Shown here: positions 7,316 through 54,800 of the stretch, piece after piece
Numbering within the stretch: the stretch's first letter is position 1
Layout of the letters: each line of letters begins with the position of its first letter
Source: Trichosphaerium sp. ATCC 40318
Lineage: Eukaryota > Protista > Tubulinea
Reading direction: 5' to 3'
DNA length: 64,000 nucleotides
Assembly: GCA_038496445.1 (NCBI GenBank)
Contig: JALMLS010000299.1
Span: 186,001-250,000, forward strand
Position numbers and translations under genes: made by a program
Notes under the pieces: model-generated
Databases searched by the model: none
The model's input: only the letters and a program-made list of their open reading frames with translations
Told to the model about the DNA's origin: nothing

Positions 7316-8661
7316 TTAAGTCTTTCGCGTATTTACTATCCATTGCGAAATCTCAGTCCGAATCTAAACCAAATAAACAACAGCATGAATAGAGCCAACA
7401 CATACAATCTTTGTAGCGGAATCAAATAGTCTTTCCCATTCTTCTCCAGTACCAACAACACCGTGCATTGTGCGCAGGTAAATGTTTTTAACATGTGTTG
7501 TCTCTAGAAGCTTGTATTTTGAGCCAGTTTTTTTAAACTCCTAATAATATCATTCATTACCTTGTAGCCTGTATTGGCTTGTACCTCTACAATGTATGCT
7601 ATCAAATTACGCTTGGTTATAGGAAGCAAGTCAGAGTACTTTTGCTTTGCTGAGGGTAAATGTGGATAAATCCAAAAGTTCACAGCTATGCAAGGTTCTG
7701 TGCATTTAATAAAGTGCCACCAATACCTAAAAAATTTAAGCAACGAAAATATGTCAATATTGGTACATTGGAATAAGCAACACTTCACTAGTATTAATGA
7801 CACCATGCCATACATTTGTACTGTTAATCGTTGGATTCTTGTTACCAGATAGTGGGTTTGTAGACGCAGCATTGCTGGAGTTATCTCTCCTATAGTGCTA
7901 TTGAGTACTATAGCATAGAAAGTTTTGTACAGAGGTATCTTGTCAATATTTTCAATCGGAGAATAGCTATTCATTGTCAAGAACATTGTGCTGTAATTAA
8001 TTGTAAAAATATAAGGATACAGCCACACTTCCTTTTGACCTGATACTATACACAACATTCCGGGGTGGGCTAGACTTTGTCACACAAAATAGCATCGGAA
8101 TGCTTACCATCATAGTGAAGGTGAGAGAAGTGTTCAGCCATGCCGATCCAAATCCTTCCACTCTCACTTTTTGCCATTAGCTATGTTACATGTTGCTCAA
8201 TTGTACCCATTGTTTAACCCCTCACGTTTAGCTTGAAGTTGTCAATACTGGATAGATAATGTACTGAAGTACTTGGCATATGATAGTCATCTAGTAACTT
8301 TGCACTGAGTTGATCAATGCACTTATTGCCAACAAATACATCATTCTTTGCAGGTGTAGTTTTTGCTTGTTCCCAGATGTCAATGAAGTCTGCGAAGGGT
8401 ATTGCTGATGGCTTGTATGGAAAAGAACCTTGTGATGGTTGCAAGAATGCCTACAGTATTAACCGTTGTGTTTAACTACTCAAATACCTCAACCAGTGTA
8501 CTATTATCAACAGTCTGCTTTAAATAATCAGCAGTCCACTTATGTAATGCCTGCCACCCAGTTATTGCGCTAGTGATAATAATAGGTTTATTTATCGCTT
8601 CAAAGTCGTCTGGTAGACTTTGCCACTCTACTCTTTCAATTGAAGTAGTTGTTACATCCAT
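7316..8661 (-). CDS. JmjC (cupin_8; JMJD5/JMJD7/TYW5/HIF1AN-like) 2-oxoglutarate-Fe oxygenase
   Basis: INKPIIITSAITGWQALHKWTADYL; HFSHLHYDAH (HxD); GQKEVWLYSP; LLIPMYWWHFI; IAVNFW. The 3' end is inferred. Confidence 0.85.
7967..8020 (-). other. U12-type GT-AG intron
   Basis: Donor GTATCCTTA; TTCTTGAC 9 nt before the end. Removal gives KEVWLYSP. It is 54 nt and stop-free, so support comes from motif and homology. Confidence 0.75.
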
Positions 8662-8756
8662 AAAGTATTTTTTTTGTTTTGTAAAAGGCTCGCTTAGCGA
8701 AAATACATGGTAAGTTACAGCAAATTTAATAAACTACACGAGACTGTTTTCTTTTT

Positions 8757-10042
8757 CTACATTAAATCCATTACAACTTTTAGGTATGCTCCAAAATCTC
8801 TACCAATCTCTCCATAAACTTTTGATCGCTCAACGCGTTTTCCATAAGCTTCCAGTTCTTCGTTATATTCGGCAAGGTCAGGATTATGTTCTGGCAAAGC
8901 ATCTAGCACCTTAAACAAGTGCGAGAGTAAAAGTATTTTATCTACATTTGTTGCAGATGTATTACGATGGTACTTTGACAAGCAAATATGAAAACGAATG
9001 AACTTCTCAACAGAGATAGGTGCTTTGTCCATTTTTTTATACTGAGATGGCACATGATCCTTTGAGAACGCGTTGAGTAACAACAAATCAATGATTTTGC
9101 CTTTTAGGGCATTATTGTCCAAATTCTCTAAAAGGACTGTCTTTGCATCGTGCATGTACGACTAATATAAAATTAATAAAGCAAAGTACATTTGCAACAT
9201 ACTGTGGTTTTTGTTTCAGTAGTACTCCTCAGTAGTGGCCAATTTATATGAAAGCTTGTCACTATCTCTTGTTCATAGTCTGTATTAATATACGCCGAAC
9301 AAACCTGTTAAAAAAAACCATCAGCTAACCCAATAATTGAAGTAAAAAACATACCAAGTTGGCAAGTTTGGCAGCAGCGCATTGTGCTTCATAACAATGT
9401 TTAGATAAAATGGTGAAACACCATTCCATGACATTCTTACGGCCAATGCGCCCGTTATCACCTCCACCTGATAAGCAATCTCTCATATCAGCTACAAGAA
9501 TTAGAATACCATTTTTTTGTAGTTGACATTTCATTTGTACCCGGCTTTTGAGTTGACACTATAAAATTTATGACACACGTCCTAAGAGCTATGGAGTGTG
9601 GTGCAAGGGTTCGACTGACAAGTGGTGATAGTATAGATTCAAGCCAAGGCCACGATTGCTTTGATAGCATACTTAGAAAGGTAAGGTTGGTAGTACAAAA
9701 GTAACGGACGGTTTACTTTGTTGAATCTCTCGCCATTCCACTACCCTTTGTCGTATCTCATCCAACAGCTGGCGGATTTCCCCAACGTCTTGATCTAAGC
9801 CATCTTCCACGACAGAAAGCAAAAATTTTTGCAATAATACGCTAGACCGCGCTTGAGTGTATGTACATACATGACTAAAGTACCACGAGGGAAATAAATT
9901 CAATCTAAGCCAACTGCGTAATCTACAAGCTGCGCTTGCTTTGGATATGTTCTTTTCCATAACGTCAGGTTCTAGCGCGTCTGCGATCATCTTTTTACAT
10001 TAACTTTGTTTGGTGTCAACTACCGTACCCGCGGATCGCCAT
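8757..10042 (-). CDS. Multi-exon helical protein of unknown function
   Basis: Exon ORFs 9673-9990 and 8757-9155 joined by GT-AG introns; start uncertain (9990 or 10042). Confidence 0.55.
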
Positions 10043-10428
10043 GCGTTGTACCTACACTACTATGCTTCGACATTTTGTCTGGCAACCCGCCAATTCAGTT
10101 GTTCTGTAAGAGTTGCGAATAATTATTAATTTTTGTGAGATTTCTACCAATTTCACACGAGACTCGTCAAACACATTCCAACCAATCAACTGAAGTAAAA
10201 GTAGCGGTTGCCACTTGACGTTGAACTAACCTCATTCATACAAACTAACAACAGCTTTGCTTTTTCATAACAAAAGAAATACAGAATAATGTGGGGAAGT
10301 ACGATAGGGTACACGCAATCGCCTTCACGAAAGCGAAAATTACCTTTTGAGTGCGAACAAGCAGTAAAGCGACCAGCAAACATCGAAAACACTTCCAGAC
10401 TCTTTCAAGCAAGGGACAAACCTATTCA

Positions 10429-11026
10429 ATGGAGTAACATACCCAGGAGGTGCGTTTTTCGCAAATAACGTACAACCGCCAATAGCTTATTCTTATTTCT
10501 TAGAGTACCGTGTGCTTCTAACACGCGAAAACGCAAGTTTGTGCCTTTGTCTCCACTTACATCAAAACGGCGTAGACGAGCTGTGGCTCCAGCCGTTCCA
10601 ACACCTCTTGTCAATCAACCAGTAGCGTGCAAGGCAATACCAACTGAGGTAGCGTATTCTGCGAAATCACAACATTATTCGCTCATGTCACCCAAGTCTG
10701 CAACACAAACACTTCTCAGAACAGTACCAATCACTCAAAACTTGCTGCGACCTGATGGTGACGTTCATTTTACCTTTTCGGACTCCGTCGCAGAGTTGTT
10801 AGCACCAAGACTCGATGGCTCTGCACGCCAATATCACGTGCCTGAACTATTTGACCCATACAAACAAGCTTTGGTTGTTTATGAAGATCCCAACAAGATG
10901 ATCAACGATTTTAAAGCAAAAGCAAGAGAACAAAATTTTGATGAGCAACAGATGAATACTACTTACTTGGACACAGAGATGTACGAAGAACAGCAAGATT
11001 CAGAAAACGAAATGGATATTGATTAA
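10429..11026 (+). CDS. Probable nuclear protein of unknown function (basic NLS-like stretch, acidic tail)
   Basis: 5-nt first exon ATGGA, then an intron, then VPCASNTRKRKFVPLSPLTSKRRRR...QALVVYEDP...EMDID. Confidence 0.6.
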
Positions 11027-11228
11027 TCCACCACCGACTCAGCTCAGCGAATGTAATATACTGTCAATTTGTAAAAAAAAGCCTACACCCATGCGGTTCC
11101 AATAAAAATTCACGTGTTCACCAAGTATATTTTGTCAAGCTCCCAAGAAAAAGAAAAGTTTTTTAGGTTATATTGAGTACAAAGCCACTTAATCTACAAT
11201 ATTGGTGTGGCGCCCATAATTACAACAA

Positions 11229-12417
11229 TCACTGGTCCTCCGAATTATCAGGCTCAGTTTGTTTTGTAGTTTCTTCTTTGGTTTCTGCAAGTTCCCTTTC
11301 AGTCTCCGCCTCTTCCATCTCTGCTAAACCTCGCAACAGAGCCAATGTTACTCGGGATGCGGCTTCTCTCCGATCCTAGCTCATGTAAGAACGATACCAA
11401 GACAAACTTGTTCGTACTTTATCAGACATAGACTTAGTCTGCTCCTTTAATGCACGTAGCTTACCAAACGCTTGTTCAAATCCTTCAGTAGAATCCAAAC
11501 CCATGAAAAAATCATTTGGCAGGAACGGATTTTCTGGAATAGAAGATGTGGTTGCAGGTTCGTCTCCACTGTTCAAGGACAGCCCTGCGAATAGCGAATC
11601 TACAGTTGCATCGTTTGAATCAGGGGGCTTATAATCCCCGGTGCTACCTTGTGCCGGAGCGTCGTCTAATGGGCTCTGTTAGGCAAGACTCGATTGCATC
11701 TCAGTTTACCTTGAATTGGTCGAGCTGTTGTTTTGTAAGCCATATTCTCCCACATGTTGGCACTCAGAGCCTCTATAACACGATCTAAACCATACTTCTC
11801 CTTGCTTGATTCTGTAAGAAGAGTTAGGATATAACAATAGAGTTACAGCTACCTTGACTGCCATCCACGTGCAAAGGCACAATCTCAAAGCCGTTATCAA
11901 AGCACCTTTAATTGTTTAGCAACATGTCATTCTACAAAAAGGCAGTACCAGCTTCTAATTGTTTTTCCTGGCTCGCTCTGAAGTGAGGGCTCATTAGGGG
12001 TTATAATAACACGTATTGATGGGTTGTGTTTTGTGATAAAATCTTGCCATGTTTTTAGCACGCTGCAATCCTAGTTTGAAAGTTTATCTCAAGCTCACCC
12101 TAAATGCTTACCTCTGACTCGTTCATCACAATGAGTATACCATCAGTAAATGGACCTTGGCTATTTACGCGTTGAGAATCCTCTAAACTTGCTTCTTTAC
12201 CCGTGTATAGTACAATCTGAGCGTCATAGTACTTGGTGTGTAAATTAAGAGAGCATTTGTCCCAACCGTCAGATTTTAACCAATGGCTTGGTTGTCCTTG
12301 GAGCATATCTACGCGGGTAAGTGGTACTCGGCTTGTAAGCATCGCACTTTCTATGTGAGCCTTTCGTATTGTATAATTGCTTCCTACTACTAACACCATG
12401 TTGCGAGGTTGTTCCAT
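11229..12417 (-). CDS. AAGAB: Alpha- and gamma-adaptin-binding protein p34 homologue
   Basis: LHTKYYDAQIVLY; WCFDNGFEIV; EKYGLDRVIEALSANMWENM; FEQAFGKLRALKEQ...RREAASRV. Confidence 0.85.
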
Positions 12418-12503
12418 AGTTGCGTTAATTTGTTTAAACAAAATTTGAAAAAGATGTTGAAAGACGTCCATGAAAGTCTCAATAATTGCACTGAACAACA
12501 AAA

Positions 12504-13465
12504 ATGCGCGCAGGGTAACGTTACCACTGCATTGTAGATTTGTTGACTCTCTGTAGGACTCTAGCGTTTTCTGTTGTATTAATAATTATTACAATCCTAT
12601 TTGTTGTATTGTCCGTAATACAAGCCAAACCAAAAATTCCGAAAGGCAAAAAATATACAGTATATTTTGTTTCTGACCTAAGGTAGATTTTTCTGGCGTG
12701 GTTGTCGTTACGGAGTGGAGTACAACAGATGTCAAAACGCCGTACGTGCCGTTTTTCGTTCGGGCTGCTCGTACACGCCAAACAACGCTACATCACGATA
12801 TACGCTATATAACAGTCATGTTTGAATCGTTATTAGTAATTAACATATTTTAGCGCAATAGTTTACAACGTCACATACTCATGGACTGATGAAGTACTCC
12901 GATTCTCAAACACAACAACTACAATTACGCACATGTATGCTCAAGTAAGATTGTTAATCACGTTTTTTATGTAACTCACCCAAAAAAATCAGGGTGTAAC
13001 TTATACGGTTGTTAATAATACGTGCAATACACTGTCATTAACAGAAGATCAGCCTTTGTTCTGGATACCAACTGACTCGAGTTGGAGAGGTATTTTAGAA
13101 AACAAGGTTTTGCAAGGCGTTAATAAACTCTTGTTTAGGAGCTCAACTGCTTACTCGTTACTCATCTGAAAAAGAAGAAATCGTATCTATGGAAGAAGCT
13201 GAGCGGTGGATTTACACAATAGACGCCAAGATAGTGACAGAGTACTACATAACCTATGTTGAAAATTATGTCGTACGTTCTACAATCTGTTGACACTAAT
13301 CCTAACGAAAAATAGACTGAACAACGTGAACCTCAGCTCCAGCAAATCCTCATTAGATACAGAGATCCTGATGTTGAAAACCGGATATTGCAGTATGACT
13401 TCTACAACGTAGTTTCAAGTATTGTTGCAGAAAATGTGCAAAAGCCTCCGCAGTGTGTTATGTAG
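12504..13465 (+). CDS. Secreted ependymin-related / LolA-fold-like protein
   Basis: Signal peptide, then KPKIPKDFSGVVVV...NNTCNTL...LQYDFYNV...KPPQC. Uses a probable GC-AG intron at 12646-12686. Confidence 0.55.
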
Positions 13466-13624
13466 AGACAAAGGCTTGGTTGCTGGTCATGCAAGATTAT
13501 ACACGTGCTAATCGCTCGCGAGTCGTTTGAGCGGTTGCTAGATGGAAAGAAAGAGAAAGAGGAACGTACGCCGGTTACTGTACATATTTACTCCAAACAA
13601 AAAACAAAAATAAAGTTGAACCTT

Positions 13625-14672
13625 CTAGCAACAACCTCCTTTCTTCCTTGGCTTGAATCCATACCTAGAATAAATGATATGTAAAGAGGAATTATATTAG
13701 ATAAAACGTACTGTCCATCAGCACCACCTGGAAAGGCACTATAGTGCTTCTGCGCATTATCTTCTACAATATGTAAATAGTTATGAATATGAGACTTAGT
13801 CGTTACCGGGAAATGAATCAGCCAGCGTCGAGAAGAGTTCTTTAACGTTTTCTCCTGGACATATTTAAATAGTGTTAAAGCGATTTTATGTACCAGTTTT
13901 TGCACTTGTCTCAAAGAACAAATCGACTTCATAGTTTTCTGCAAGTGCTCTTCCATCCTTTTCTAAGACTTCGCGTTCATCCTCTCTATCCACCTTGTTC
14001 CCGACTGTAGCGTAGTAAGCAACAAGACTTCACTTACATTACTATACCCAAAACCAAGACACCTCGTATTTTTGCATCGTTGTAGTACTTTGTCATCTCC
14101 TTCAACCACACTTTGGCTCCATTGAAAGATCTACTCAAAGTTAATAAAATGTAATGTTTACACATGCCAACAATTTGTTTGTTATGTCGTATAGAACAAT
14201 CGCAGCGTCAGAATCCCTGTAGTACAAAGGAGCCAAACTGTGGTAGCGTTCCTACTACAATAAAAATACATATGCTTAAAGTATGGACTACCTGTCCTGC
14301 AGTGTCCTAACGGAGTTGTTAGTTTTTTTGGGGTTGTTTATACTATCACGTTACCCAAATATCGAGCTTTACTGCTTTGTCGCCCACAGCTACAGTTTGA
14401 GGCTACGAGGGGTTATTTTCAAATAAATCAACTCCATTTGCAAAATGCCACGTGCTACAGGCTTTTTATGTATTCGTACGTGGAAAGCAGCACCAATAGT
14501 GGGCGGCATGGCCTCAACAAACTCTTTTTGTAGAAAGTGGTACACTATTGATGTTTTACCCGTTGAGCATTCTCCAAGGAGGACTACACCTATTTAACCA
14601 AAGTGGTGATAACGCACTTGCAGTACCAACTTTTTTGGACTGACACGTGGTGAAGCTTTCCTGTCTCTTCAT
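13625..14672 (-). CDS. Rab GTPase, Rab5/21/22-related
   Basis: [13 protein letters not shown]; PTIGAAF; [21 protein letters not shown]; VGNKVD; FETSAKTG; C-terminal GGCC prenylation motif. Confidence 0.92.
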
Positions 14673-15019
14673 GCTAAGGAGTACAATTGGCTAACTGTAT
14701 TATTTGCTTTTGACTTTTGCGTACTCAAGATTACTTAGTGTCAAATCCACTCAAGTGTAGCGTCGAATCGTCCCTTTGTGCGATTTGTGGCTTTTTGAAG
14801 TGATCTTCAACAAAATGGGATCGCGGATCGTGAAAAACATTAATTCTAGATCCTATACCTGTACGTTTACAAGACCATGAACAAGCGTATTTGTAGTACT
14901 TAGGTGTGGATTTCAATAAAGGAAATGCAAACTCGGCTCATTTCGCAAGAAAACAAACATTTTGGCATCAACACAGTTGCGCATACATGCACAGGCCTGT
15001 TTCAATTTATTTCTATAAG

Positions 15020-15277
15020 TTACTTGCTATACTTTGAGTATCCATTGCCAGAGTTGTAGTACGATGACCCATCAGAGTTTTGATAGTAATACGAACCATT
15101 GCTGTTTGAATAATGGTAATTGTTACCTCCAGATCCAGAATTACCAGAACCGGAGCGGTAAGTGTTGCCAGATGAGTTTTCGCCTTTGTAGCTGTATGAG
15201 TTCCCGTAGCTTCCACTTTTGCCGTTGTCGCCGCTGTATTGAGATCCGTACCCACTGTTTCCTCTGCTGTTACTCAT
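15020..15277 (-). CDS. Intronless 85-aa Gly/Ser/Asn/Tyr-rich small protein
   Basis: Single ORF with YHYSNSNGSYYYQNSDGSSYYNSGNG repeats. Confidence 0.75.
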   Translation of the reverse strand: MSNSRGNSGYGSQYSGDNGKSGSYGNSYSYKGENSSGNTYRSGSGNSGSGGNNYHYSNSNGSYYYQNSDGSSYYNSGNGYSKYSK

Positions 15278-15523
15278 GTTTGCACTTGTTTTGTTTATTT
15301 TACGCGTTGACGTGGCTTAAACTCAGGACAAAGGAATTGTGAAGCTTATGTCCTTCTCAGAGAAGGAGGGAAGGTTCGACAGTCGTTGTAGGGTAATAGT
15401 TCTGTTTATTATTCAAGCGTTTCAAAAACTGCTATTTACGGATAAGGAAGCTTAATAAATTCGCATAGAGATGACTATTCAATAGCAAGATAGACGTCTC
15501 TCATGGACTAATCCAGTTCGTTC

Positions 15524-21461: not shown

Positions 21462-21694
21462 TTTGCTAATAACAGTGAGCTACGCCTGCAGTGTCTTGAG
21501 TTACTTCTTGTTAAGGAAAGGCCAGTATAATCGCCCAATGGGCCGGTCCACACATTTCATTCTATCTTATCTTGACACTACATTTTTTTGAGCGAAAGTA
21601 CGCATTACGACACCATTTGTACACGATTCTTGATGTCATTTACAGTTTCTATTTAGAATCCAAAACCTAATACGGCATATAACAACACCAAGCG

Positions 21695-27198: not shown

Positions 27199-29794
27199 TC
27201 ATAGTTGGCCTTTGTCGTTTTGTATTACATGTTGTGCTAGTTGTTTGTACAACGCCAATAGCTCTGGGATATCTCGCATTGTTAGGTCTATAGCTTCAAC
27301 ATTCAAAAAGCGATCCTAGAAAATAGTTAGCCCGGTTGTTGAGAGAAATAGTTCTTACTATATCCTTGATATTATGGGCTTCTTTGTGGTTCATTAATAG
27401 CTCCGTAGACTGTGGCGCTGAATTATACTTGTGGTTTGCCTCATCAACTTCCTGTGAAAAAACAAATTATTACTTGTTTATGAAGAAAGGTAATGTCGGT
27501 ACCTTTGTTGGGGATGGTGTCATTGCTACATTAAAATCGATAAGAGGTCCAGGTGCTGGTGTGGATGGTGGAGAAACCATTTCTATAGGTGCTGTGACTT
27601 CTTGAGATGCTTCGCTACTCTGAACTAGTTCACCAACGGTGGAGTCCCGACTAGAGAAAGCTTTTGCTGAAGGCCGCGAAGAATCGCCTGAAAACACTTC
27701 CTCAGGTTTATTAGGCTGAAGAGGTAACATTGTAAGTGGCACAGAGCTGTTGTTTTTTGGCACTAAAGCATCTTCCGCTATTTTGTAAAGCCTTTAATAT
27801 CGTTAGTGGTGGAACTAAGAGATGACCAAACCTTGCAAATTCTTCATTTTCTATGTTAAGCTTTGTGGCGTCCAAGTTTTCTAAAAAGTCTACAGCAGAT
27901 TCCAAGTGTGTAAAATAATAACCACTCTCTGTGATCATCTTCTTTGGGTCTCTAAACCTTTGTATATATCTTTTAGGTTAAGATAAATGGTAGTTACATC
28001 GTTATGTGGTAAAAGAAGTAGGATACTGAATATTAGAGCATAGCTGTGGCGGATTAGCTTTGAGTACGATATATATTAATATTGGTAAGAATTCATCAGC
28101 ACCAGCAGGGTGTCCTTGAGAGCTTGCTTTGTTTAAAATTCCTGGATATTAAGGAGAAAAATCGCAAAAATGACAATGGAAAAAAATGTCAAAATGTGTA
28201 ATGACATGTGTCACAAAGGATACGGTAAATAACCTTACAACAGTTTAAAATGCAAATCATTTTATCACGTGGGGCACGGTAATTGTTAATTTTCCGTAGC
28301 TCTATACAATACATTAAGGCGCAACGTGTTATATGATGGTAAAATAAATTGCGTGCCTTGAACACCCAGATCAAATTTCTTGTCATCAGTATGATACTTT
28401 GCAATGTCCAAATGACTTGGCGTTATAAATTGCATACACTTTATTCGTTTTGTAATGGCTTTATCCCTTGCTAACTCTTCTATACTTGATGAAAAGCAAC
28501 TGTGACGCATAAGTGATACAGAAGGAAAAGATTTAAAGCCGCACCAATCAAAAATTTTTATCATTAGATATTTTTCTATTTGCTCTGAAATGACGTCAAC
28601 TTCTTCTTGCGTGGCTTCTCTGTAGAGTCAAAAATTAGCCATGTTCAAAAAAATAGTCTCTGTACCGCCACAATTTGTGTTCATTCATTTTGTCCATAAT
28701 ATGGTCTATAAACCCACGCACTTCATCAACTTGCTCTTCTGTGTTCGGCGGTGTAGTAAGAAACGCAGAAACCCACCTAAATATCATATTACATTACAAG
28801 GGATTCGTCATTTACAGCCTTACGCTCTAACATGACTGTATATATCAAGAGCTTTAGGATCTTTGAACTTTGCCCAAAATAAATCTTTACCGACCAATCC
28901 TGTCTTATCTGTGCTGCTCGTCTCCTTTGCGCCGGCTACTGCCCCAAAAAGCCTTCCCCATCTACTCTATTAATACATATACAATTCCTATGGTAAATCA
29001 CGTACCGACTTTCTGACTTGTCTTGCTTTTTCTGCAATTTTGCTTCAATCTTCGCCTTGCTCCATGAACAGCCACTGTATGTTAAAGGTTCTGATATCAA
29101 AGTAATGTGAATATTATGTCCTTGAATACTCATTTCACCATCGCGAAGTACTTGCACTGTCTGTAAAGGGTTTTTTGCGGAAGAAAATTTAGCGTAAGTG
29201 TCACTAAAATTCGTTTAGTCTGAAAAACGCTTTACGTTTGTAGCAAACGTCGACGTACGCTAATGAACTGAAGATAACTTGTTTCCTTGGGTTTGGCTTA
29301 ATTTGCTTCCTTTCTGATATTCTGTGCATTACTTTAACATCGCCCTTTAGTTTGTGTTAATAATGCGCCACTTTCTAAGATGATCTTGTGTACTTTAGTT
29401 TCTGTTATGCCTAAAATGCCTGATAAAAGTTTAGATAACGTTATGTTAATGCGTTGTTGCTCGCACCATTTACAGTGAGTAATTGCTTCTTGTTTGATGG
29501 GTTTGTAAGCACAACGTGTGTCAGGATAAATTGCTTTGTAACATCAATGCCTGCAAGGGCCACATTCTGAGGTACCAATATGGAAGCCTGGTACAGAGTA
29601 TCAAAGAAGTGAGGTAAAATAGCACTCAAATTACCTTTTTGTAAATAATAGGTTTTACGAGGTCTCTAAACGCTGGCTGCTGTAGTTTGATAAGTATGGC
29701 GTTATTCTCCCTGCGAACAGTTAGTACGATAGTGGGATTGCTTAGTCGCTTACCTTTCGTAGTCTAAGAACGTGCTCTGTATTCCCGCTGACAT
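27199..29794 (-). CDS. VPS9-domain Rab5 GEF with VARP/ANKRD27-like N-terminal domain
   Basis: [25 protein letters not shown]...[32 protein letters not shown]...ESGYYFTHL; C-terminal [17 protein letters not shown]. Confidence 0.9.
27970..28026 (-). other. U12-type GT-AG intron
   Basis: Donor GTATCCTAC; TATCTTAAC followed by CTAAAAG. Removal restores SNIQYIQRF. Confidence 0.8.
28142..28223 (-). other. U12-type GT-AG intron
   Basis: Donor GTATCCTTT; TCTCCTTAAT followed by ATCCAG. Removal restores [10 protein letters not shown]. Confidence 0.88.
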
Positions 29795-29920
29795 GTTTGG
29801 GCGTTAGGCAGAACTCATACGTTGTCTGGGGCACTGGAGAATTTAAAACTAGAAATTTTGTAGCAAATTTACGAGACTGGTGTAAAAAAGTCTGCCTTAG
29901 TTTTTGACGCCATCTACAAC

Positions 29921-31866
29921 ATGTTGGGGAGTGCTGCGGTACAGGCCGAGAAAAACCCGAAGCGAAATTCGCTTCTTCTGCTGTTGCTGGTGTTTTTGGT
30001 TGTTCTTTTAACACTGCTTTGTGGCGTGTTGTTTCAGTTCATGGTAGACACTAAGGTGTCTTTCAAAGCGTTGTACAGTAGTTATGATCCGCATTACAAG
30101 CCTGTCGTTTTAAAACCATCGAGTGGTACGTAGTTTGCTACCTCACGTGATTGTTTATTGTTATAGCTGATGTAAAGCATATCGTAAAACGAATGAAGTA
30201 TTGGCGCCCTATAAATGAACAAAAACCTATCAATGAAGAACGTTGGCTTGTTTTCGAGCCATGGCGCGTAGTATGGAAATTTATACTAATTTTAACACGT
30301 CAACAGGGCAGCTGGCATAAATAATCGAAGAATGTCACTAGAAACGATGGTTGTAATGGCTTATCTGACTAACAGGCAACAAAAAATTCTCAAATGTCGG
30401 ATTGACACTCTCATAGAACCCTTGTACTACCAAAGCCATACGTACAATACCCCTATTTACAAAAAGTGTCTTACACTCATGTACGTGCATGTAAGTTGTA
30501 TTGTAGACTCACAGTGTACTAGTTATGGGATATTGAAGACATGGCACGCGCTGTACCAATCGTGGAATTTGATTATTTCGAAAATAATTATGCTGCCTCT
30601 CATCCAGGTAACCACGTGCCTAGTTTCTCTCTTACTAACTCTTTGAAGGATGGTATGATGAAAATAATCCACAAGTGATGTTTGTATGCAGATGGACTGA
30701 TATTCCGCAGCAGCAAACAATATTTGCATGGCCGAGAGTCCCAGTCATTGTACAATGGTAAATTTCAACTTTTATCAACTAAAATGTCTAAAGGCAACAC
30801 CTTTACGGGATATGATGGAGAAATGGAGAGCTCCTAAGATTGGAACACTATATAGTAGCGAGCCACCTGGTTTCAATACAGCGCCAGTACTGCACTTCCC
30901 TGGAAGCGTTGTATTTACACATTTTTACACTTGGTATTGGTAAGGGAACCTTTTTTGACTTGTCAGTAGTAAATTAAATGTATGAAGGTACTCGGAACCT
31001 ATTATGTTCAAGCAAGTAGCGCAGCTTATGAAGGATTACGTACACTTTGTACCAGAAGTTTATGTTTTATCTGCAAGAATATTGGCCGCTATGCCAAAGA
31101 CATTCTCGACAATACATTACAGACGAGGCGATTTTCGTATCCAGTAGCAATGAATTTTTTGTCACATGTGTTTATTTTGTGCCCTTAACTTTAGACCAGA
31201 GTATAAAGACCAGCGACACATTACACCCAATCAAGTATTTGAAAACACGTTTGAGTTATTTGAGGTACTTTTCCGCGCTCTTGTGCATCTTAATTAAGTG
31301 TCACGAAGGAAGGAGAAGACATATACGTAGCAACTGATGAAGACATGAAAGTTTTCAAGCGCGATTTTATACCTGTATTCGAGGTATACAGTTTTACCTT
31401 TAATTACTATTATAGTTTGCTAATGATCTCAAAGAAACGCTATAAAGTACATTACTACGGCATGTACGAGGATTTGATCAAGTCTGATGTCACAAACGTG
31501 TGGCTTCCAATGGTTGAAACTGTAATTTCATCTCAAGGCAGAGTTTTTGTTGGCACTTTGTAAGTTTATCCTCATTTCATTAGTTTCTCAATGCTAACCT
31601 TGTAAAGGTTGTCTACATTTTCAGGGTACATTACGCGATTGCGTGGATACATGCCTCAAGTAGAGAATAAAGAATATTATTGGACCTGTTATAAGTATCC
31701 AAATGATCCTGGATACACTGATGGTCCATTTACAAGTGAAAACCACTTGCATGGTACTTAAAAAATTGTGAATCTAAACCTAAAACGCTTAGGCTGGGGC
31801 AGAGAGTATCCAGACGCATGGAGCGGTCTAGCAACTGTTGAACCAGAAATGAATGATTCAAAATAA
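29921..31866 (+). CDS. Type II membrane O-fucosyltransferase-family (POFUT-like, GT-B) glycosyltransferase
   Basis: N-terminal TM; FEPWAAGINNRRMSLE; TNRTLVLP; IHYRRGDF; IYVATDE; FVGTLLSTFSGYITRLRG. Confidence 0.85.
31137..31194 (+). other. U12-type GT-AG intron
   Basis: Donor GTATCCAG (variant); GCCCTTAAC followed by TTTAG. Lies directly after HYRRGDF. Confidence 0.7.
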
Positions 31867-32007
31867 AAATGTAATGTAGAGTAATATTTATTTGGTGTGC
31901 GGGGCCAAGCTATCTTGTGTGACACCTTTGGTTTTTTTTTTGGCTACTAAAATTGTACAAAGGTTGGTTTTGGCTATCAAATCTTTGTTCTCGCAAATAC
32001 AACACAA

Positions 32008-33532
32008 ATGGCAGCTTTGGGCATTGGAAATCCTCTATTAGATATCAGCGTAAACGCACCTGATTCATTGTTCGCAAAGTAAGGCTTTGGAGTGTTAAAA
32101 AAAGTTTTTTTGTCTTATTCTGCTTAGATACAAATTGGAGACCGGTAAGGCTATTCTCGCTGAGCCAGAGCACCTTCCATTGTGCGTAATATAACTTCAA
32201 CGCCAAAGCTAACAAAAAGTAAGGTACCCTGAAATTCAGGCTAACAAAGATGCTGAATACACTGCCGGTGGTGCTTGTCAGGTACGTAGAGGAAGAGTTT
32301 TCCTGACGACTTCTCACTTCATCGCTTCCGCACGAACACGCTAATAATATTGTAGAACACTATGAGAATTATCTCTTGGATGCTACCAGGTGGTAAATCC
32401 TCAAACTACATTGGTTGCGTCGGTAAAGACGACAACGGAAAGCTCTTGGGGTATCTACGCTACAGAAAGTTTTTCATTGACGCGTTTTTAGCACCGTATG
32501 TAAAAAAGCCGGTGTAAACGTCCACTACTTGGAAGATGAAAAAACAGCAACTGGAACATGCGCTGTTCTCATCAAGGACAAAGAACGGTAACCGGAGAAA
32601 TAGAAAAAAATCAATCTTAATTCTTTTTAGTGCCCTAATCACAAACCTTGGTGCCGCCAACTGCTACACCACAGAACACTTTGACACACCAGCAATTCAA
32701 GAAGTTGTCAAGTCCTCAAAGTTCTTCTACGCAACCAGCTTTTTCTTGACTGTCTCTCCAGAGACACTTGTCAAAATTGGCAAACACGCTGCCAGCAACA
32801 ACCAAGTACGCTTTTTTCAAAGATATCCAAAAATTGTGATAGCACTATTGTCCGTGCATGCCGACTGACCACATTTCTTAATAGCTATTTATGCTCAACA
32901 TTTCTGCTGAATTTTTGGTTCAATTCTTCTGGGATCAAATGCACCAAGTATTGCCATACGTCGATATTCTTTTCGGTAACGAACACGAAGCCGCTGAATA
33001 CGCCAAGAAAAAGGGATGGGATGTACGTGGAACCCTACTAAGTTATGAACATACTGACGTATTTTATTAGGCCACCGACTTGAAGACTGTAGCTAAGAAA
33101 CTCGCTGAAGAGGGTCCAAAAGTAAACGACAAGAGAAAGAGAATTGTTGTATTTACTCAAGTACGTTACATGAACTTCTTGTGCAATACAAAAAAAAATA
33201 ACACTCTTTCTTAGGGCGCTGACCCAACCCTTGTCTACAAAGATGGTAAAATCACTGAGTACCCTGTTCTTCCATGTCCTCGTGAGGAAATTGTTGACTT
33301 GAACGGTGCTGGTGATACCTTCGTTGGAGGATTCATCGCTGGGTACGTTGAAATGCTGCTTTTTTTTTGTCGCTTTAATTCTTCCATAATGCTAACAATC
33401 ATTCCCTTTAGTTTGTTGTCTGAAAAGCCTCTTGAAGAGTGCGTAAAGGCCGGCCAATTCTGTGCTTGGAATTGCATCCGTAGCTCTGGTGTAACTGTAC
33501 CAGAAACTTGCACCTACAAATGGTCAAACTAA
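32008..33532 (+). CDS. ADK: Adenosine kinase
   Basis: GIGNPLLDIS; AGGACQNT; TGTCAVLI; LITNLGAAN; DILFGNEHEA; VDLNGAGDTFVGGF. Confidence 0.95.
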
Positions 33533-36763: not shown

Positions 36764-39439
36764 ATGGGGCTTCTTTGGTGTAAGCCAGAGGACGCAGTGA
36801 ACAATGGCCATGGCGTAAATGGGTCCCGGCAACGAAAGAGAAATAGTGTAACGCCACAGAAAAAATATCAACAAAAACCAGCCTGGAAAAAGACTGAACC
36901 GTCGGATGAAATTAAGCGCAACACTTCGTACGTTGTTATCTTTTTTTTTTTTGACATGTCCTCCGAAAAATCTTTGTAGCTGTGCTGTCGGTACATAAAT
37001 AACGTGTATTTACTTATTTACCATATCTAGACAACGAACGTATACAGATTTTCGTTTAGCGCTTACAGAAGATTTTCCTGTTCCGTTTGCGCCAGCAAAA
37101 GGCGATAAGAACGATGACGCGCAGAGCCCCGTTGATTTGGAAGAGGACTCAATAACGAGTGACTTGAAACAATACACACGAACTGTCATTTTAACACAGA
37201 AGATCGCCAGGGGATTCGTTGCTCGTTCGAAATATAAAAAATCGAGAAAATACATAGTTACAATACAGACCATGATAAAACGTGCGTTGGCTATGCGTAT
37301 GGCAGAAGATTTAAACGACTATCGTATAATACAATCGTTGTTTCGCAGACATAACGCACAAAAGACTTTGGAGCAAAAGAGCACGTCTACAAAACATCAT
37401 TTTGGTATAGTTGTTTATAGTTGTAGAATACGTGGTTGTTTTGAATTTGCAGAACTGTATCAGAAGATGGATTGCCTGGGATCTTGCATCCCGAAGAAGT
37501 AGGTAAAATTAGTGCATAACAGCTCTAAGAAACTTGTAGTGCATGGCGTTACAACTCTACAGTCGCTTATCAGACGGTACAGAGCATCTCTGGTGTCTCA
37601 GCGTATAGGTGCCTTAATCAGATTACAACTGTCAGTTTATAACTTCTTAATCGCCTTATTAGGTGCTGCTAAGCACATACAACGCATATATAGAGGATTT
37701 GTAGTGAGAAGAGACTATAGACGAGTCTGGCTGCTACGTAAGACTATCAAGTTACCACAATTTGCTGTTGACACTTTCTAGGTGCCCAAAAGTCAAAGTT
37801 CCGTGCAATTGTAAAAGGATTCATTGCAAGGCGACGCTACAAGCGCTTGAGTACGACCATAAATTGTTGCTGTCCTAACTTGCTATTAGAAAGGCGTGCA
37901 CGTATTGTTAAAGAAATACTCGATACAGAACGTGAATACGTAACCCGTCTTCTCATGATAAGAAACGTAAGATGAGATAAAAATAAGTTCCTAAAAGATC
38001 ATTTTAGTTGTACTTTAATCCAATCACTGCCAAGCCGAAAAAATTCGGAATTACTCAGGAGAATGTAAAGGTAATGAATGACTTGCAAACTAAGATAAAA
38101 GAAACTAACGCTGAATAGGAAATATTTCCACCATCCCTTCAAATCATTACAGATTTCCACAGTGCTGTACTTTTAACACGACTACTTGAGCGATCAGAGA
38201 GCTGGAACGCATGGCAAACACTTGGAGACTGTTTTTCACAATTCGTAAGTTATCCGTTACAGTATAAATATTCTAAGTTCTTACCCTAGTCTGGATTTCT
38301 TAAAGTGTACACTACCTACATCAATAACTATGAGGCATCTTTAAAGTGTTTATTGGAGCTTAAAGCAGATTCTCCAAAGTTTGCTGCTTATCTCTTGGTA
38401 TGTGGTTTTCTCTGATTGTTTAAAAGGACAAATTTGAGTTTTATGCAATTACTAAGTGAGAGTAGGAATGCTCTTCGCGTCCTGAATCTAAGCTACTCGA
38501 CATCCAATCCTTGCTAATTGAACCTATTCAAAGGTAAGGCACATTTAAGAATTTATAGTTTAACAGCCGTTTGTAGGATCCCACGTTATCAACTTCTACT
38601 AACGGTAAATAAAGATATAACTTATGCATTGTGCTTACAGAAAATAGGACCTTTTGAAAAAGACACTGCAAGTACACGATGATTATCCTCTGCTTCAAAA
38701 AGCTCTTTTAGATGTCAAGCAAGTTGCATCTATGATAAACAATAGAAAAGCAGTACATGAAGACAAGCAAAAAGTGTTAGAAGCCTTCAAACTTATAGTG
38801 CCTCCACAAACCGTACGTAGATGCCACGTTTACTTTGTGACTTATGCTCCTTCTAGTACCTCATTCAGCCAACAAGAAGCCACGTACACAACGGGTTGCT
38901 GAAGGAGCTGATTTTGAAGGACGACAGACAAGAAGGCTTTCATTACTTCTTGTTTAATGATTTATTGATAAAGACGAAGCACTCTGGTGGTATGTAACTC
39001 CTTTTTGTTCCTGTTCTTAGCCTTTGTAGTATTTAAGACCAAAAAATTCCGTGCCAAGTGGGATCTCAGTAAGCTCACATTTACTCGTGATTTATGTATC
39101 CTCAAGTTTAGCTTTTTAAAGAACTAATCAACTGCGTTACTTCTTTGACTTATTAGCTTTCGTGTTGCCTAAAAAGAAGGTGATTCCTTTAGCTTTTGCC
39201 CTGAGATATGGAGAAAACAGTATGATATTGAGAGGTATGTATTTAACAAGTAGAATGAGTTAATGACAACCTCTCTAGCTAAGACGGAGAAAGATTTTGA
39301 AGCTTGGACAGCAGCATTTGAATTAGCTATGACAAGTCTCGGTGACATGCGAAAATCGAGGCAGCTGTTGTTATCTAATTCAGCCGGTAGTCGAAGCTCT
39401 GAAGGTTTGAGTACCGGTGGAGATAGCGAAAGAAGCTGA
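36764..39439 (+). CDS. IQ-motif RhoGEF (DH-PH) with MGxxxC N-terminus
   Basis: IQ-like TQKIARGFVAR and IQRIYRGFVVR; DH KEILDTEREYV..LLIEPIQRIPRYQLLL; PH FLFNDLLI..AW. Confidence 0.9.
39096..39156 (+). other. U12-type GT-AG intron
   Basis: Donor GTATCCTC; TTCTTTGAC followed by TTATTAG. Removal restores the PH-domain frame. Confidence 0.65.
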
Positions 39440-39448
39440 GAATAAACT

Positions 39449-40479: not shown

Positions 40480-40681
40480 GCCGTTTCAATCTTCAATGAA
40501 GGATACTGTGAGATGTAAAACGCTCACAACGGCTCATCGCTTGTAGCTAGGATCATAGGGTATCAAAGTAGCTGGTTGTTAGGCTTAACAAACGCGTTTC
40601 TGAGTAATCCCAAGTGACACTAGCGTTTTGTGGGAGATTTTTGCGTACAAATCATTTTGTATCGTACGCCACGTCACACAG

Positions 40682-42595: not shown

Positions 42596-42721
42596 ACAGC
42601 AATGATTTTTGTAGTTATTGCAGTCAAAATAAAGTTGGGCTTCAATGCTCATATAATTCAAAACAAGGGGTTTATTGTTGCCACTCAGAGGTGGCAGTTA
42701 TTTATGCAGCCTAAATGAGGC

Positions 42722-48600: not shown

Positions 48601-48843
48601 GGCGTTTGAGCAACAAGAGAGGATCTCTTGGGTAAAATAAAACAAAAAATTTGAAGAGGGTTTAGAATAAATGTGAATTTGGTTTTTATAGCAGTATAAA
48701 AACAACGGAAGTCGCGCAAAAGGCTAACCATACATATAATATTTACATTTTGGTGATTGCCAATCTCTTTCCTTATGTAATGGTTCTTTTTTTACTGCAA
48801 TTTGTTGAGTTCCTTTTTCTGCCCGAAGCGTTCCGGTTTTTTT

Positions 48844-49700
48844 TTACTCTCCCATCTTATCCAGGATGTTGCGTACCAAATGGTTCGTATTCCGCTGGCC
48901 AGTACGCGTTCGTGAATTTAGCATTTGCCTCTTTCTTGTTCTGTTCGCTTTGTCCTCTTGTAGTTTCATACTTCTACGTTTTATTTTCGTTTGGTGATCA
49001 ATTTGCTCTTCATGCTTTTACGGCAGAGTGTCAACTCAAAACAAATTATGGAAAAAAAAAACTTGGTCTTGCAAAAAAAAAAAAGTTAATGTTTGTACCC
49101 TTGACTTATACCTCCTTTTGAGGTGGTAATACGGGTCGCTTGCTGGACCGTCTCCATATAATTCTCTGTCCTTTTTCCTTGCTGCTTGCTCTGTCTCTCG
49201 TTTTTTCTGATCAGCTTCTTTTATTTCTTCCCAAATCTCTTCCTCACTTAATTTTACAACTTTTCTTCCTTGTTTTCTTTGTTTTCTGTACTATCATGGG
49301 CGTTACAACAGACTTTGCAGGCGACGTATATGTGTAAAAAGGCGTACCTTTTCCCTTAACCGACGTTTTTTGCGTGTAAATTTGTCGTATTTATCAAGGT
49401 CAGGACTGACTCTGTGACGATCTTTGCCCCATGGTAGAGCCGCTGGCGCTGTGTCAATGTCGTCATAAATATTTTTCTACACTTATTAGTATTGTACGCG
49501 TGGAATTCGTGTACGTGTTCTAGGCTAGCGTTTGTCTTGTGTAACGCGCTTAATGCACTTCTTTCCTGTTCGCGAGCTTTTCGCAACTCCTTATGCTCGA
49601 GTATGCTTAAAGCTATATTAAATAAGTATATTCACCGTCTTTGTAACAAAATTACCTGATGCTGGATAACGCGGCCTGCTTTTGCGTCCTCTTGGTCCAT
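48844..49700 (-). CDS. Lys/Arg-rich probable rRNA-processing protein (FYV7/CCDC59-like)
   Basis: C-terminal MLNSRTRTGQRNTNHLVRNILDKM resembles the KRTxxGQP...LLxKI motif of that family. Confidence 0.5.
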
Positions 49701-50036
49701 CTCGATACGCCATAGTATAAGAAGCCGACAGCTGGCAGTAGTAATTGGTTTATTTTACGTTTGGAAAATATAGAAATTAGTAGACCAGCAATGCGTTGTC
49801 AAACGCTTCAAACAATCAGTTTACATGGCTCTCTCGGCCATAGCCAAGTTGCTCAAGATGGAAACCAAGTACAGGCGTTGATTGCTTAAAGTCACGTGCT
49901 CACAGTAGAGTCTTTTTTTGGCTTACTTTGGCAAGTGTAACTCTTCATTGTTGTATAGCGGTGGTTTTTTTTACCTAGCTTTACTCCGCTGGCCTTAATC
50001 AGCCTCATTTCGAAATAATAAAACGCCGATAACACC

Positions 50037-51825
50037 ATGGATAAAGATAACACGCCAGAAGACACTACCAAAGATGGCTATGACGTGAAGGACATTCTCA
50101 CTTGGCCTGCTTGGCGCGTTGTGCATCCTACAGAGAGAAACAGCAACAAGTTTTTCTTAAAAATGCTCATGGTACGTTAGAAAATACCATAGTGACGCTA
50201 AGGGTAGCAGGAAATATTTTCAAGCGCTGCTAAAGTGTATACGCCAATTTACGCTATATCCACCTATTTCTCGAACGGTAGGAAGATAGACGTTAAATAC
50301 GCCAAAGAAGTTATAATTGCCACATTGCGTAGTAGTTCCATGATAAGTAAGCAGCTACACAAATACTCGCTACACCTTCTCACGCTAGATAGCTGTCAAT
50401 ACCGTTTGTTTTGGTTGGTTGACATGTAAACTGTTAGAATACGTCAAAGAGCACAGACCAATATATTACTTGTCTTGTGCGCTTGCCTCGTCTTATAGTG
50501 GGATCATGATCGAGAAACAATCAAGGTATGACACACTGTATTGATGTTTTATTTTTTTTTTGTGATATTTTGTAACTCTTTTTGACAGGAGAGGCGCCCT
50601 GGTATGTGCTACGGATGGGATTCACTGTTGCTAACACCTATAGGCGTCGTACGTGGGTAATATTACACTCGAGACAATTTGGCGGATGGCATGTTGGTAT
50701 CGCGTTTCTAAAATATCTAACTACTTTTAGGCTCGTGCCAGGGAACTTGTTGCACCTTTTACGTAAGCTATTACCATTGTTCTACCTGTAAAACCGTTTT
50801 GACTACTCACGTTTATTCAGAGGTGGCCTAACATTATTGTTTGCATCTGCAATGTCAATATTGTACTACTTGTTTACTCAAGAACCACAATACGCCAAAC
50901 CAATCTCTTGTGCGCGCGAATTTAAAATCAATCAACCTTTCCTACTCACTATCACTTGTTAGTTGTTTTGCGTATTTTAGTAGGTGAAGAGGGTAAACAA
51001 TCTGCGCTTGAGCGTACAATAGGAGGTTTGTTGTTTGGCGCTACATACACCAATCACTGGACAAAAGTACACTAAAATAAGTGCATTGTAGCGTTTATAA
51101 CGATTTCGGCATAGTATCACGTGCTTGTTGGCTTTATTCGCAACTTTGCTTTTGGCGTTCTAATAAAGCTCCTCGTTGTAGTAATTGGCTACATTCTAAA
51201 GAGGCGCAGCGCTAAACCAGACGAACCAATAAAGTACAGTGCCCTCAGTGCCTTATTTTTCTCTTATATTTCTACTTAGATCTTTCACCCAGCAATTAAA
51301 GGAATCTGCTGGAGAGACTTTCAAGATTGGTTTGTTCCTTGCAACACTAATCGGTGCCAATCGTCTCACTGCTGTCGTAATGCGGTCTATAGATGGCGGA
51401 AAACGACCTTCCCATGCTCTTGTAGCGGGTTTCATATCGGGTATGTTATCTTATTTCGTAACATCAGGAATTTATTGTATACAGGATTATCAATGGCAAT
51501 ATGGCAGAGTACTTCGATTGCTACGTACTTTACAGCGAAGGCTATTGAATCTGTCTTTAGTCTAGCTGTTGGAAAGGGCTTGGTATGTTTTTTATGTGTT
51601 TGTAAGTGTTTAACTTGTATACAGATTTCGTCACCTGCAAATATTGGTGCACTCGTTTGGGCAGCTTGTGTATCACTTAATCTGTATGGAATGACTTTTG
51701 AGCCACATACAGTTAGAGGCAGTTTCAAAAATTTCGTGCATAGAGCAACTGGTAATAGAGTAAAGCATTTGGAAGAACTATCAGTTCATCTTCGTAAAGT
51801 CAATAACATTCCAGAAGTACAATAA
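50037..51825 (+). CDS. TMEM135: TMEM135-family multi-pass membrane protein
   Basis: VVHP; AKVYTPIY; IEKQSRRGALASYV; LLFASAMSILYY; ALVAGFISG; TFEPHTVRGSF. Confidence 0.72.
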
Positions 51826-51896
51826 AAACGTTTTATAGATTTCTTTATCTTACACCAAATACAATAACTCTTTTTCTTTCTTCAGGACAATGCCAA

Positions 51897-54800
51897 CTAT
51901 TTTTTACACTTTGAGAGTATGAGTCCTAAAAGCTTACTTCTGGCTTGGCTTAGCAAACCAGCAACAAAAGGAGCATGAATAGATGCTCGCTCTGCATTTA
52001 CCACTAAATAGCATGAACAAACAACAATTACACATCTTATCCGTACACTTTGAAAAGAGCCAATCGTGGAACAACTCTCCTTTGCTAAACACTGGCGGAT
52101 TAGGAACTGCAGGTCCAAACGGTGGCACTCCCTAAACATTAGTTCAGCTGTAGTTATATGTCGCGACGTGTATGTACCTCCTTAATAGCCAATTCTACCA
52201 TATATTTACCACGTTGTAGCGGTTTAACAACAATGAAGTTGTCTCGATTCATTAAGGTCCAACGATTTGTATCAAACAGAAAAAAAAGAAAAAGAGGATA
52301 CGCAAGAACTGCCCTGAAAAAGTAGGAGGTTTGAATTTCCCGTCTCCTTCCATAAACACAATGCATGTCAAGTTATTACAAATATGTTTCTTCTTTAGAA
52401 TTATACTCCTCGCGGCTGAACTAGCAGTCTACACAATTGTCAAACTCTTCCAAAATTTATGCAACTTTGATACGCACCTCATTCACTTCCTTTAGAGGAA
52501 TATATGTTGAGACATGGAACATAAACTCGAACTCACACCATCTTTGTACTATTGAATGCGTACCATCCGATTTATTAGCTAAGTTTAATTAGGATTGATG
52601 AACAAGATGGGCATTACCTGTGGTATCAAGTCCACCGGAAAAGCCTTGAAATCCCTCTAATTTTACTTTTCGGCCAAGAAAACTCAGAAACTCATCAAAA
52701 GCAGAGCTTCCTTTTGTGTTTTCGAATATTTCATCTTCAGCTGTTTGGTTTTTTGCAACGTAAATGACACCAATCTTATGACGTATTACTTTTGAATACT
52801 TGTTCTTTTGACACCTCTCATAGTCGAGTAGTTCCGACATTATACATGGGTGCTACATAAAACGTTAGGTATTAACTGACAGGTCTAGTCTTCTTACTTT
52901 TGTAGAAACCAGTGTTGCGTTGCTAAATAAGGCGTGCTCAGTAATCATCTTTGCTATCTTCTTAATTGTTGGCAGTTTCTTGGTGCGGTCTACTTTAAGA
53001 TGGAAAGTTTTATCTCCAGTCCGCACTCTAATGATACCCAACACCCGCTGCCCAGAAATACACGCGGATATTATTATTGGCTAAACAGTTAGTAAACACG
53101 CTAGATAGTGGACACGCACTTCGTCTGGATGTCCTGGAACAGGGATAGTGCCCAGTAAATTGCAGTGTTCATTTTCTACGAACTGCATACCAGAGCCATC
53201 GTCGGTGCTCTCTGAGCGGTGTTACATAAAAAACAGAATACAATTCTCATACCAGTCAACCCTTTGGAAACTTTAAAGAAATTATCTTTGTAGTGAAACG
53301 TCGTTAGCTCAGGGTCTTGAATAAACAGTTGACGGCGAGGAGATTGTCCTGAAAGTGGATCTACGGACTGCCCAAGCTCGACAATATAGCCGGGAGCATC
53401 CTAGGTATGTCAACAACGAGAGTACATCAACTACTACCAAACCTTTACAATGTCCACATCTGTGGGTATTTCGTTTGTCTAAATGTATAAATACAATCAA
53501 CTTTCTGTGCAACGTGCGTACGCTTTCTATCTCACCAATGTTTCCCCAAAGATCTTCAAACTTAAGGAGAGCCAGTGAGCTCTTGAACGGTACTTTAATA
53601 CGCTTAAATGCATTACTACGCCTTCGTATCTACCAAACCAATTAGACACAATAAAGCAGTATCTAACTAACAATTGGTGGGGTGTCCTCATCGCGAATTT
53701 GCAGTCCAAAAGCTGCTGCGGCATCATACTTTCGCTTTGTGGTAGTACGAGAACTCTGGATAAGTTTAGATAATTTATATGTGAAATTGCAAACTACTAC
53801 CTTTGGTATTCTGTGTATCCTGCTAACTGACTTTGGCATTTGAATATGCACTTTCATATCTATGCGACTATCATCTATTTCCTTGCTGGTCCGTAGTGTG
53901 TTGTGTTTGCGCCGCATTTTTTTCTGCTTGGGTCTACTTGTCTCCATGACAGTTATTTTAGTTGGTCTTTCTTTCTTAGGTCTCTTTTTCTTTTCTTTGT
54001 GTTTTCCTTTCAACTCTGTTGCGTGGTTAGCCGGAATCTTCCATAAATAAAATCAGAGGTACTTTTGAAAAAATCTACTATGTGATCGCGTTTACACATT
54101 TGCCCTTCTTCCATTGGTGTACCAAAAGGTCCCTTACGACGAATTACTGACATGATGCTACTATGCTACATACCACAGTGTCTACTTCTGCTCCAAAACT
54201 GATGAGTACTTGTACAGACTGGAGATTGCCTTTCCGAGCTGCAAGATGTAGCGCTATCTATTATTAACACTTATCCTCATCCAACTGTACTTACCAGTCT
54301 CTTTCAAACTGTTCGTTGCATCGACAGTAGCACCGTTTGTGAGTAAAAATAGCAAATTTCCTGGGCCAGACTGTTGGATCAGTTAGTATCAACACTACAA
54401 TTAGCAAACTACCTTCAAGGCTGCGTTGTGTAAGCAAGTTTGTCCATGCTCGTTGCAAGAATTTACATCAACAGTTCCCAATTGAAGCATGATATGAGCA
54501 ATAAATAGAACTCTACATTTTAGCTAAGTTTGGCTACGATTTCTTTTGTAGTGTCGTACGAGTCGCTACATTTACATTGCATCAGGTAGTGTAATGGAGT
54601 AGATCCGGATGCATTCTTTGCATGTCATTAGTGCAAATATATAAACAATACTATCGTACCTTTGCCCCAGGATCCGCCCCTGCGTGGATAAGCTTTTCTG
54701 CGATATCAGCGTGCCCTGCAGCTGCTGCACAGTGCAGTGGTGTCCACCCGTTTTTGTCTTTTGACTTGGGTTCGTTTAGTATACGTTTTACAAGCTAAAA

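Follow-up and report, generated by a model that had tools for sequence, protein, structure and literature searches.

The 64,000-nt stretch of the Trichosphaerium sp. ATCC 40318 genome considered here (hereafter the window; contig JALMLS010000299.1, positions 186,001–250,000, 39.6% G+C) carries 38 predicted genes interrupted by 266 predicted introns (median 45 nt), and six introns in five of these genes have the appearance of minor-spliceosome, or U12-type, introns. The gene model was derived with a self-trained Viterbi gene finder in which coding sequence is modelled with three-base periodicity, splice-site matrices are learned and intron length has an explicit term. The model recovered all 11 RNA-supported introns of the + strand. 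Published figures for the Trichosphaerium sp. draft genome (70.9 Mb, 37.7% G+C, exons averaging 154 bp and about 8 introns in each gene; PMC10521059) agree with the composition and gene structure of the window. RNA contigs from several runs, including X1, X5 and X8, were examined over positions 27500–33400, a 5.9-kb region containing 32 RNA joints against 31 introns in the gene model, and the introns they reveal are tiny (39–79 nt) and of the GT-AG type.

All six candidates are of the U12-type GT-AG form and are numbered here by position. Intron 1 (7967–8020, − strand, 54 nt, phase 2) interrupts a gene for a JMJD7-like JmjC/cupin protein (7364–8661, −, 7 predicted introns), and combines the donor GTATCCTTA with a branch box GTTCTTGAC whose A lies 10 nt from the 3' end. 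Introns 2 and 3 share a host, a VPS9-domain protein resembling Rab5 guanine nucleotide exchange factors (27199–29794, −, 14 predicted introns); the former (27970–28026, −, 57 nt, phase 2) has donor GTATCCTAC and box TATCTTAAC, the A of which lies 8 nt from the end, and the latter (28142–28223, −, 82 nt, phase 1) has donor GTATCCTTT and box CTCCTTAAT with the A at 7 nt. Intron 4 (31137–31199, +, 63 nt, phase 1; donor GTATCCAGT, box GCCCTTAAC, A 11 nt from the end) lies in a gene of the GDP-fucose O-fucosyltransferase (O-FucT) family (30041–31866, +, at least 12 introns), and intron 5 (39096–39156, +, 61 nt, phase 1; donor GTATCCTCA, box TTCTTTGAC, A at 8 nt) in a gene for an IQ-motif/RhoGEF(DH) protein with 17 predicted introns (36764–39439, +). 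The last of the group, intron 6 (52243–52301, −, 59 nt, phase 1), belongs to a Rap/Ran-GAP domain protein (51897–54153, −, 13 predicted introns) and pairs donor GTATCCTCT with box GACCTTAAT, its branch A being 9 nt from the 3' end.

The hexamer GTATCC begins each of these six introns and no other among the 266, followed by T at +7 in five of them and at +8 in two. A TCCTTRAY-like branch box is likewise found in all six, canonical in four cases (CCTTAAY or TCTTAAC) and reading TTGAC in the other two, with the branch A 7–11 nt from the 3' end. The original prediction, made from the DNA letters alone, had described six GTATCC introns with a branch motif close to the 3' end; all were located on the implied strands and five had exact coordinates. 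For intron 4 the predicted end at 31194 proved to be 5 nt early, as a joint at 31136|31200 in four RNA runs places it at 31199, and the predicted branch distance of 5–9 nt gives way to the measured 7–11 nt. Since U12-type introns usually have their branch A about 10–15 nt from the 3' end, the proposed compression of the branch-to-AG distance was overstated, partly through the misplaced acceptor of intron 4, but the corrected range is still slightly below the usual one.

These features must be read against the ordinary (U2-type) introns of the window, whose donor consensus, AAG|GTACGT, is itself unusual, with C at +4 in 52% of cases, and which carry a CTRAY-type branch site 10–16 nt from the 3' end without a polypyrimidine tract. 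GC-AG ends occur in 7 of the 266 predicted introns. The final 22 nt are 62% pyrimidine in the six candidates and 56% in the other introns (p=0.2), with no tract in either class; thus, while the six do lack a polypyrimidine tract as originally predicted, this absence is not diagnostic in Trichosphaerium, because the ordinary introns are equally tract-less. Two further introns have mixed features. One, a predicted GC-AG intron with donor GCACGC (28302–28356, −, 55 nt, phase 1) directly upstream of the two VPS9-gene candidates, contains a good box, CGCCTTAAT, 12 nt before its 3' end, yet is preceded by G at exon position −1. The other, an RNA-supported intron in an adenosine kinase gene (32451–32491, +, 41 nt), begins with GTATCT, carries TTCATTGAC with its branch A at −11 and follows an exon −1 G; this hybrid-looking intron was counted as U2-type.

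The statistical case for a separate class does not rest on the abundance of GTATCC, which is not enriched across the window (23 sites against 27 expected); the signal is its position at an intron start coupled to the branch box. Scored with a position weight matrix, the box reaches 5.0–7.5 in all six candidates and at least 5.0 in only five of the 260 other introns, a coupling with a probability of about 5e-11 under independence, and under the U2 model the same six introns score between −4.5 and +0.3. When the gene model was given a second intron class, defined by the textbook U12 donor and box with a prior of −3 nats and AT-AC ends permitted, that class comprised exactly the six of the 266 introns, with scores of 4.9–7.3; one borderline GTATGC intron scored equally in both classes. 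No AT-AC intron was chosen, and none had been seen in the original prediction. Five permuted donor/box pairs used as decoys attracted between none and one intron per run, none scoring 4.5 or above. Three properties that took no part in the definition of the class also separate it from the remainder: phase 0 is absent among the six and accounts for 41.5% of the other introns (p=0.04), an exon −1 G is found in none of the six as against 61.5% (p=0.003), and all six are at least 54 nt long, a length reached by 20% of the others (p=6e-5; Mann-Whitney p=0.0007), whose median is 45 nt.

Excision at the ends given above is supported by RNA for introns 2, 3 and 4. The 17 loose letters of an X1 contig that stops at 27969 correspond to the sequence from 28027, as removal of intron 2 would require. 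In X5, where the contig depth is 11, the bin over this intron has a depth of 7.8, the value for a skipped intron, as compared to the 11 expected without splicing. The support for intron 3 is one of depth arithmetic, its joint not being among the 15 joints shown: the corresponding X5 bin has a depth of 6.4, or 11 x 115/197, as if 82 nt were skipped, while an unspliced transcript would give 10.6. At the protein level the exons of this gene match Pfam VPS9 positions 8–32, 38–69 and 71–103 and are continuous across introns 2 and 3. Specifically, the 38–69 match begins at residue 6 of the exon following intron 3, and at the intron 2 junction profile position 69 lies upstream and 71 downstream, with the split codon between them. 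Run X8 offers a different view of intron 2. Its sole contig over this region (27865–28125) retains 27970–28026 at a depth of 6.2, compared with 19 on the next exon, and contains two substitutions and a 4-nt deletion within the intron, all of them outside the donor and the branch box. The contig suggests a second allele and possible retention of the intron, the latter no more than a hint.

Intron 4, with the joint described above, is positioned just after the HYRRGDF motif of the O-FucT-family gene. With the acceptor at 31199 the product aligns without gaps to the homologues P0008 and P0009 across the junction, and with a single gap to L001 and P0007. The alternatives fare worse, since the 31194 acceptor shifts the reading frame and the unspliced form requires a gap of 21–22 residues relative to the homologues. 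Pfam recognized neither the short exons flanking this intron nor those flanking intron 5, but homologue L001 does match Pfam O-FucT. The latter (positions 1–2499 of a JGI metagenome contig) is an intronless gene for an 820-aa protein of the O-FucT family, which shares 48% identity with the exon preceding intron 4. Elsewhere in the same host gene, the gene model read through an in-frame intron that ends at 31432 (within 31309–31432, +), whereas RNA contigs restart at 31433, and the 17 extra residues arising from this read-through are absent from L001. A giant-virus origin of the O-FucT gene, which would have dated its U12-type intron as a gain, was considered and dropped: the homologues other than L001 are eukaryotic transcripts. 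A scan of viral contigs with the O-FucT exon found no relative.

For the remaining candidates the argument comes from protein comparison and reading frame. Intron 5 is 61 nt long, so that its removal is required to maintain the frame. The exons upstream of it match the RhoGEF profile in order, albeit weakly, and the part of the protein after the DH domain, in which the intron resides, would by eye be a PH-like domain. Around intron 6, successive exons match Rap_GAP positions 1–38, 41–69 and 73–108, followed by the intron, a 21-aa exon unmatched on its own, and a match to 136–162 (E=0.08); by these profile coordinates, the order and spacing of the Rap_GAP domain across the intron are correct. 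The upstream exon also aligns to residues 208–240 of Rap1GAP, and a PDB search with the 21-aa exon returned no match. The consequences of ignoring these introns are apparent in the U2-only gene model, in which the VPS9 gene was split in two at intron 3 and the Rap-GAP gene ended just before intron 6; addition of the U12 class extended the latter by three exons. As for intron 1, the JMJD7-like identity of its host derives from a downstream exon matching Cupin_8 and JMJD7 in the PDB, and we presume that splicing yields a product collinear with the conserved strand that follows the HxD motif of JMJD7. A library-wide HMMER search with the 75-aa JmjC exon, aimed at a transcript-derived protein spanning this intron, yielded no matches, the query itself included, and a PDB search with the in-frame read-through of the intron likewise found none. 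As judged from profile and homologue alignments, domain continuity is restored by removing four of the six introns.

Taken together, the motifs, the phase bias, the lack of an exon −1 G, the greater length, the RNA-supported excision of three introns and the restored domain continuity make it highly probable that the six stretches are genuine U12-type GT-AG introns in the nuclear genome of Trichosphaerium sp., a marine amoeba, in support of the class assignment made in the original prediction. A number of points weigh on the other side. The ordinary branch site of this genome (CTRAY or TTRAY near the 3' end) looks like the U12 box, so that branch-site evidence is weaker here than it would be in animals, and the donor and branch-site weights of the two-class model were chosen by hand to follow the textbook consensus. 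An Rfam scan, covering the window only, detected no small nuclear RNA (snRNA) and no other family. Introns 1, 5 and 6 fall outside the RNA-examined region, which is why RNA support extends to three of the six. Intron 1 is the least supported member of the group, being 54 nt long, in frame and free of stop codons so that read-through is possible; the coding score of the read-through is only slightly negative (−0.9), while those of the flanking exons are positive. Finally, the density estimate derives from a window that was chosen because it looked dense.

In minor splicing the donor is paired by U11 and subsequently by U6atac, the branch box is paired by U12, and a U11/U12 di-small nuclear ribonucleoprotein (di-snRNP) recognizes both intron ends together. 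By analogy we infer which snRNPs act on the six introns: the GTATCC(T) donor would be bound by U11 and later by U6atac snRNA, while U12 snRNA would bind the TCCTTRAY box 7–11 nt from the 3' end. Such recognition would proceed without pairing of an exon −1 G with U1 and without a polypyrimidine tract and U2AF, and the U11/U12 di-snRNP would have to bridge both sites over a very short intron. The length of 54–82 nt, above the 45-nt norm of the window, may reflect the minimum span that this particle can accommodate. The mostly classical boxes suggest that the U12 snRNA itself is untransformed.

An alternative view would regard the six as ordinary U2-type introns that resemble the U12 consensus by chance, in a genome whose U2 branch site is already CTRAY-like. 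The absence of GTATCC enrichment in the window is compatible with this, as are the tract-less ends and 3'-proximal branch motifs of the ordinary introns and the existence of the adenosine kinase intron at 32451–32491, whose GTATCT donor accompanies the U2-like traits of an exon −1 G and a 41-nt length. Yet chance resemblance does not account for the donor–branch coupling (about 5e-11), to which the decoy motifs offered nothing comparable, nor for the uniform lack of exon −1 G and phase 0, the uniform excess length and the poor U2-model scores, and we consider it very improbable. The opposite possibility is that of a transformed, Physarum-like system, with many more U12-dependent introns recognized through degenerate donors (GTATCT and the like) and a short TTGA-type box, so that a share of 2% would be an underestimate. 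The two TTGAC boxes point in this direction, as do a few introns in which a good branch-box score accompanies a non-U12 donor, and the RNA-supported intron 32451–32491 contains TTCATTGAC with its A at −11. However, that intron bears the U2 hallmarks just mentioned, four of the six boxes are canonical, and with only 7 of 266 introns starting with GTATC the window is incompatible with the 11.9% of Physarum (p=8e-9), leaving this explanation unlikely, if somewhat less so than chance resemblance.

A more serious alternative concerns density rather than identity, namely that the introns are real U12-type introns and the window a statistical outlier in a genome with a minor-intron share of 0.3–0.6%, like vertebrates or Basidiobolus. 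The local share is 6/266 or 2.26% (exact 95% interval 0.8–4.8%), or about 2.0% if the denominator is raised to the roughly 300 introns of the original prediction, a reasonable figure given that the model predicts 266 and missed at least one RNA-supported intron; as a local value the predicted share of about 2% thus holds at 2.0–2.3%. In binomial comparisons this local share departs from the 0.55% of Basidiobolus, the highest published density outside Physarum (p=0.004), and from 0.3% (p=0.0002), and it falls well short of the Physarum value (p=8e-9). Taken on its own, the window therefore speaks against an outlier. But at a genome rate of 0.5% and about 270 introns per window the Poisson probability of six or more is about 0.003, and 1–2 such windows would be expected among 581 windows of this genome. 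The outlier explanation accordingly deserves almost even weight, if slightly less. The window documents minor introns that are frequent locally; it does not show that they make up 2% of introns genome-wide. Our guess is that a genome-wide rate of at least 0.5% is fairly likely, that at least 1% has rather less than an even chance, and that a rate near 2% is unlikely, though by no means negligible. Given 27,369 published genes (PMC10521059) with about 7–9 introns each (some 180,000–240,000 introns), 0.5% would amount to about 1,000 minor introns and 2% to about 4,000–5,000. It is a tentative, on balance doubtful, proposition that Trichosphaerium, a member of Tubulinea, harbors thousands (about 4,000–5,000) of U12-type introns with classical motifs, a complement that would rank second in size among those known and would be the first large one to use an untransformed box.

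Full-text literature searches found no paper joining Trichosphaerium with U12 or minor introns, and the genome paper (PMC10521059) does not mention spliceosomes; the minor introns reported here are in a lineage where they were not previously described. They are best placed by comparison with known systems. The canonical U12-type GT-AG introns of animals and plants have the donor RTATCCTT and the branch box TTCCTTRAC. The six resemble these in their GTATCC donor, their mostly classical box, their lack of preference for an exon −1 G and their avoidance of phase 0, and their hosts belong to old conserved families. They differ in being much shorter (54–82 nt), in having a branch A nearer the 3' end (7–11 versus about 10–15 nt), in a local share of 2% versus about 0.3% in human, and in including no AT-AC intron.

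Minor introns usually constitute less than 0.6% of all introns, Physarum (12%) being the single known exception, and surveys place the amoebozoan mean at about 0.01%. In Physarum polycephalum 20,899 of 175,198 introns (11.9%) are minor (Larue, Elias and Roy, bioRxiv 10.1101/2020.10.12.336362). Their donor is frequently GTATCT, their ends are in many cases non-canonical, and their TTTGA box, located at −9 to −12, co-evolved with two changes in U12 snRNA; among the 3,648 introns that have a perfect donor, just 20 retain the classical box. Trichosphaerium shares with it an amoebozoan affiliation, a local share above that of every other surveyed lineage, short introns and a branch point near the 3' end. 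In contrast, the share in the window is 2.3% rather than 11.9%, the boxes are mostly classical, the donors are all GTATCC and the ends all GT-AG; TTTGA occurs within the box of intron 5 (39096–39156) only, where its A is at −8, and inspection of the window by eye showed neither an inverted-repeat nor a TA-duplication signature. The minor introns found here are thus not of the Physarum type. Density and box type also speak against Physarum itself as the source of this DNA, and the transcript match of one of its genes to MMETSP0405 indicates Trichosphaerium. Among other lineages, the minor introns of Blastocystis sp. ST1 are also very short, averaging 42 bp, but AT-AC introns make up 77% of them and phase-0 introns 49% (Larue and Roy 2023, PMC10639083), whereas the six of Trichosphaerium are all GT-AG with none in phase 0. 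Protostelium aurantium/Planoprotostelium fungivorum, the richest surveyed amoebozoan after Physarum (265 minor introns; 0.16%, the survey value for Planoprotostelium), similarly keeps minor introns, along with minor snRNAs, although the share in our window is more than tenfold higher.

If it extended genome-wide, a share of about 2% would be the highest known outside Physarum, and even 0.5% would place Trichosphaerium at the top of the non-Physarum eukaryotes. A complement in the thousands, if true, would imply either a second, independent amoebozoan expansion or the retention of a minor-intron-rich ancestral state lost by most amoebozoans. A genome rich in minor introns with classical signals would provide a test of whether expansion requires transformed machinery, of a transposon-like route for the creation of new minor introns, of the minor-intron richness of the amoebozoan ancestor, and of how the U11/U12 di-snRNP operates on introns of 54–82 nt. 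On a practical level, gene models lacking a U12 class break or truncate genes, as happened here for the VPS9 and Rap-GAP genes.

Several observations elsewhere in the window may be added. An exact look-up of two single-exon products of the window retrieved no record. An intron-containing gene at 6447–7292 (+) encodes the P-loop sequence GAAGSGKT and has a candidate likeness to bacterial tRNA 2-selenouridine synthase (selU). The gene at 10289–11026 (+) corresponds to two transcripts of MMETSP0405, a library labelled Trichosphaerium sp. ATCC 40318 (Amoebozoa), 100% (last exon) and 91% identical to it at the protein level, which could be divergent haplotypes, paralogues or the products of mixed Trichosphaerium strains.

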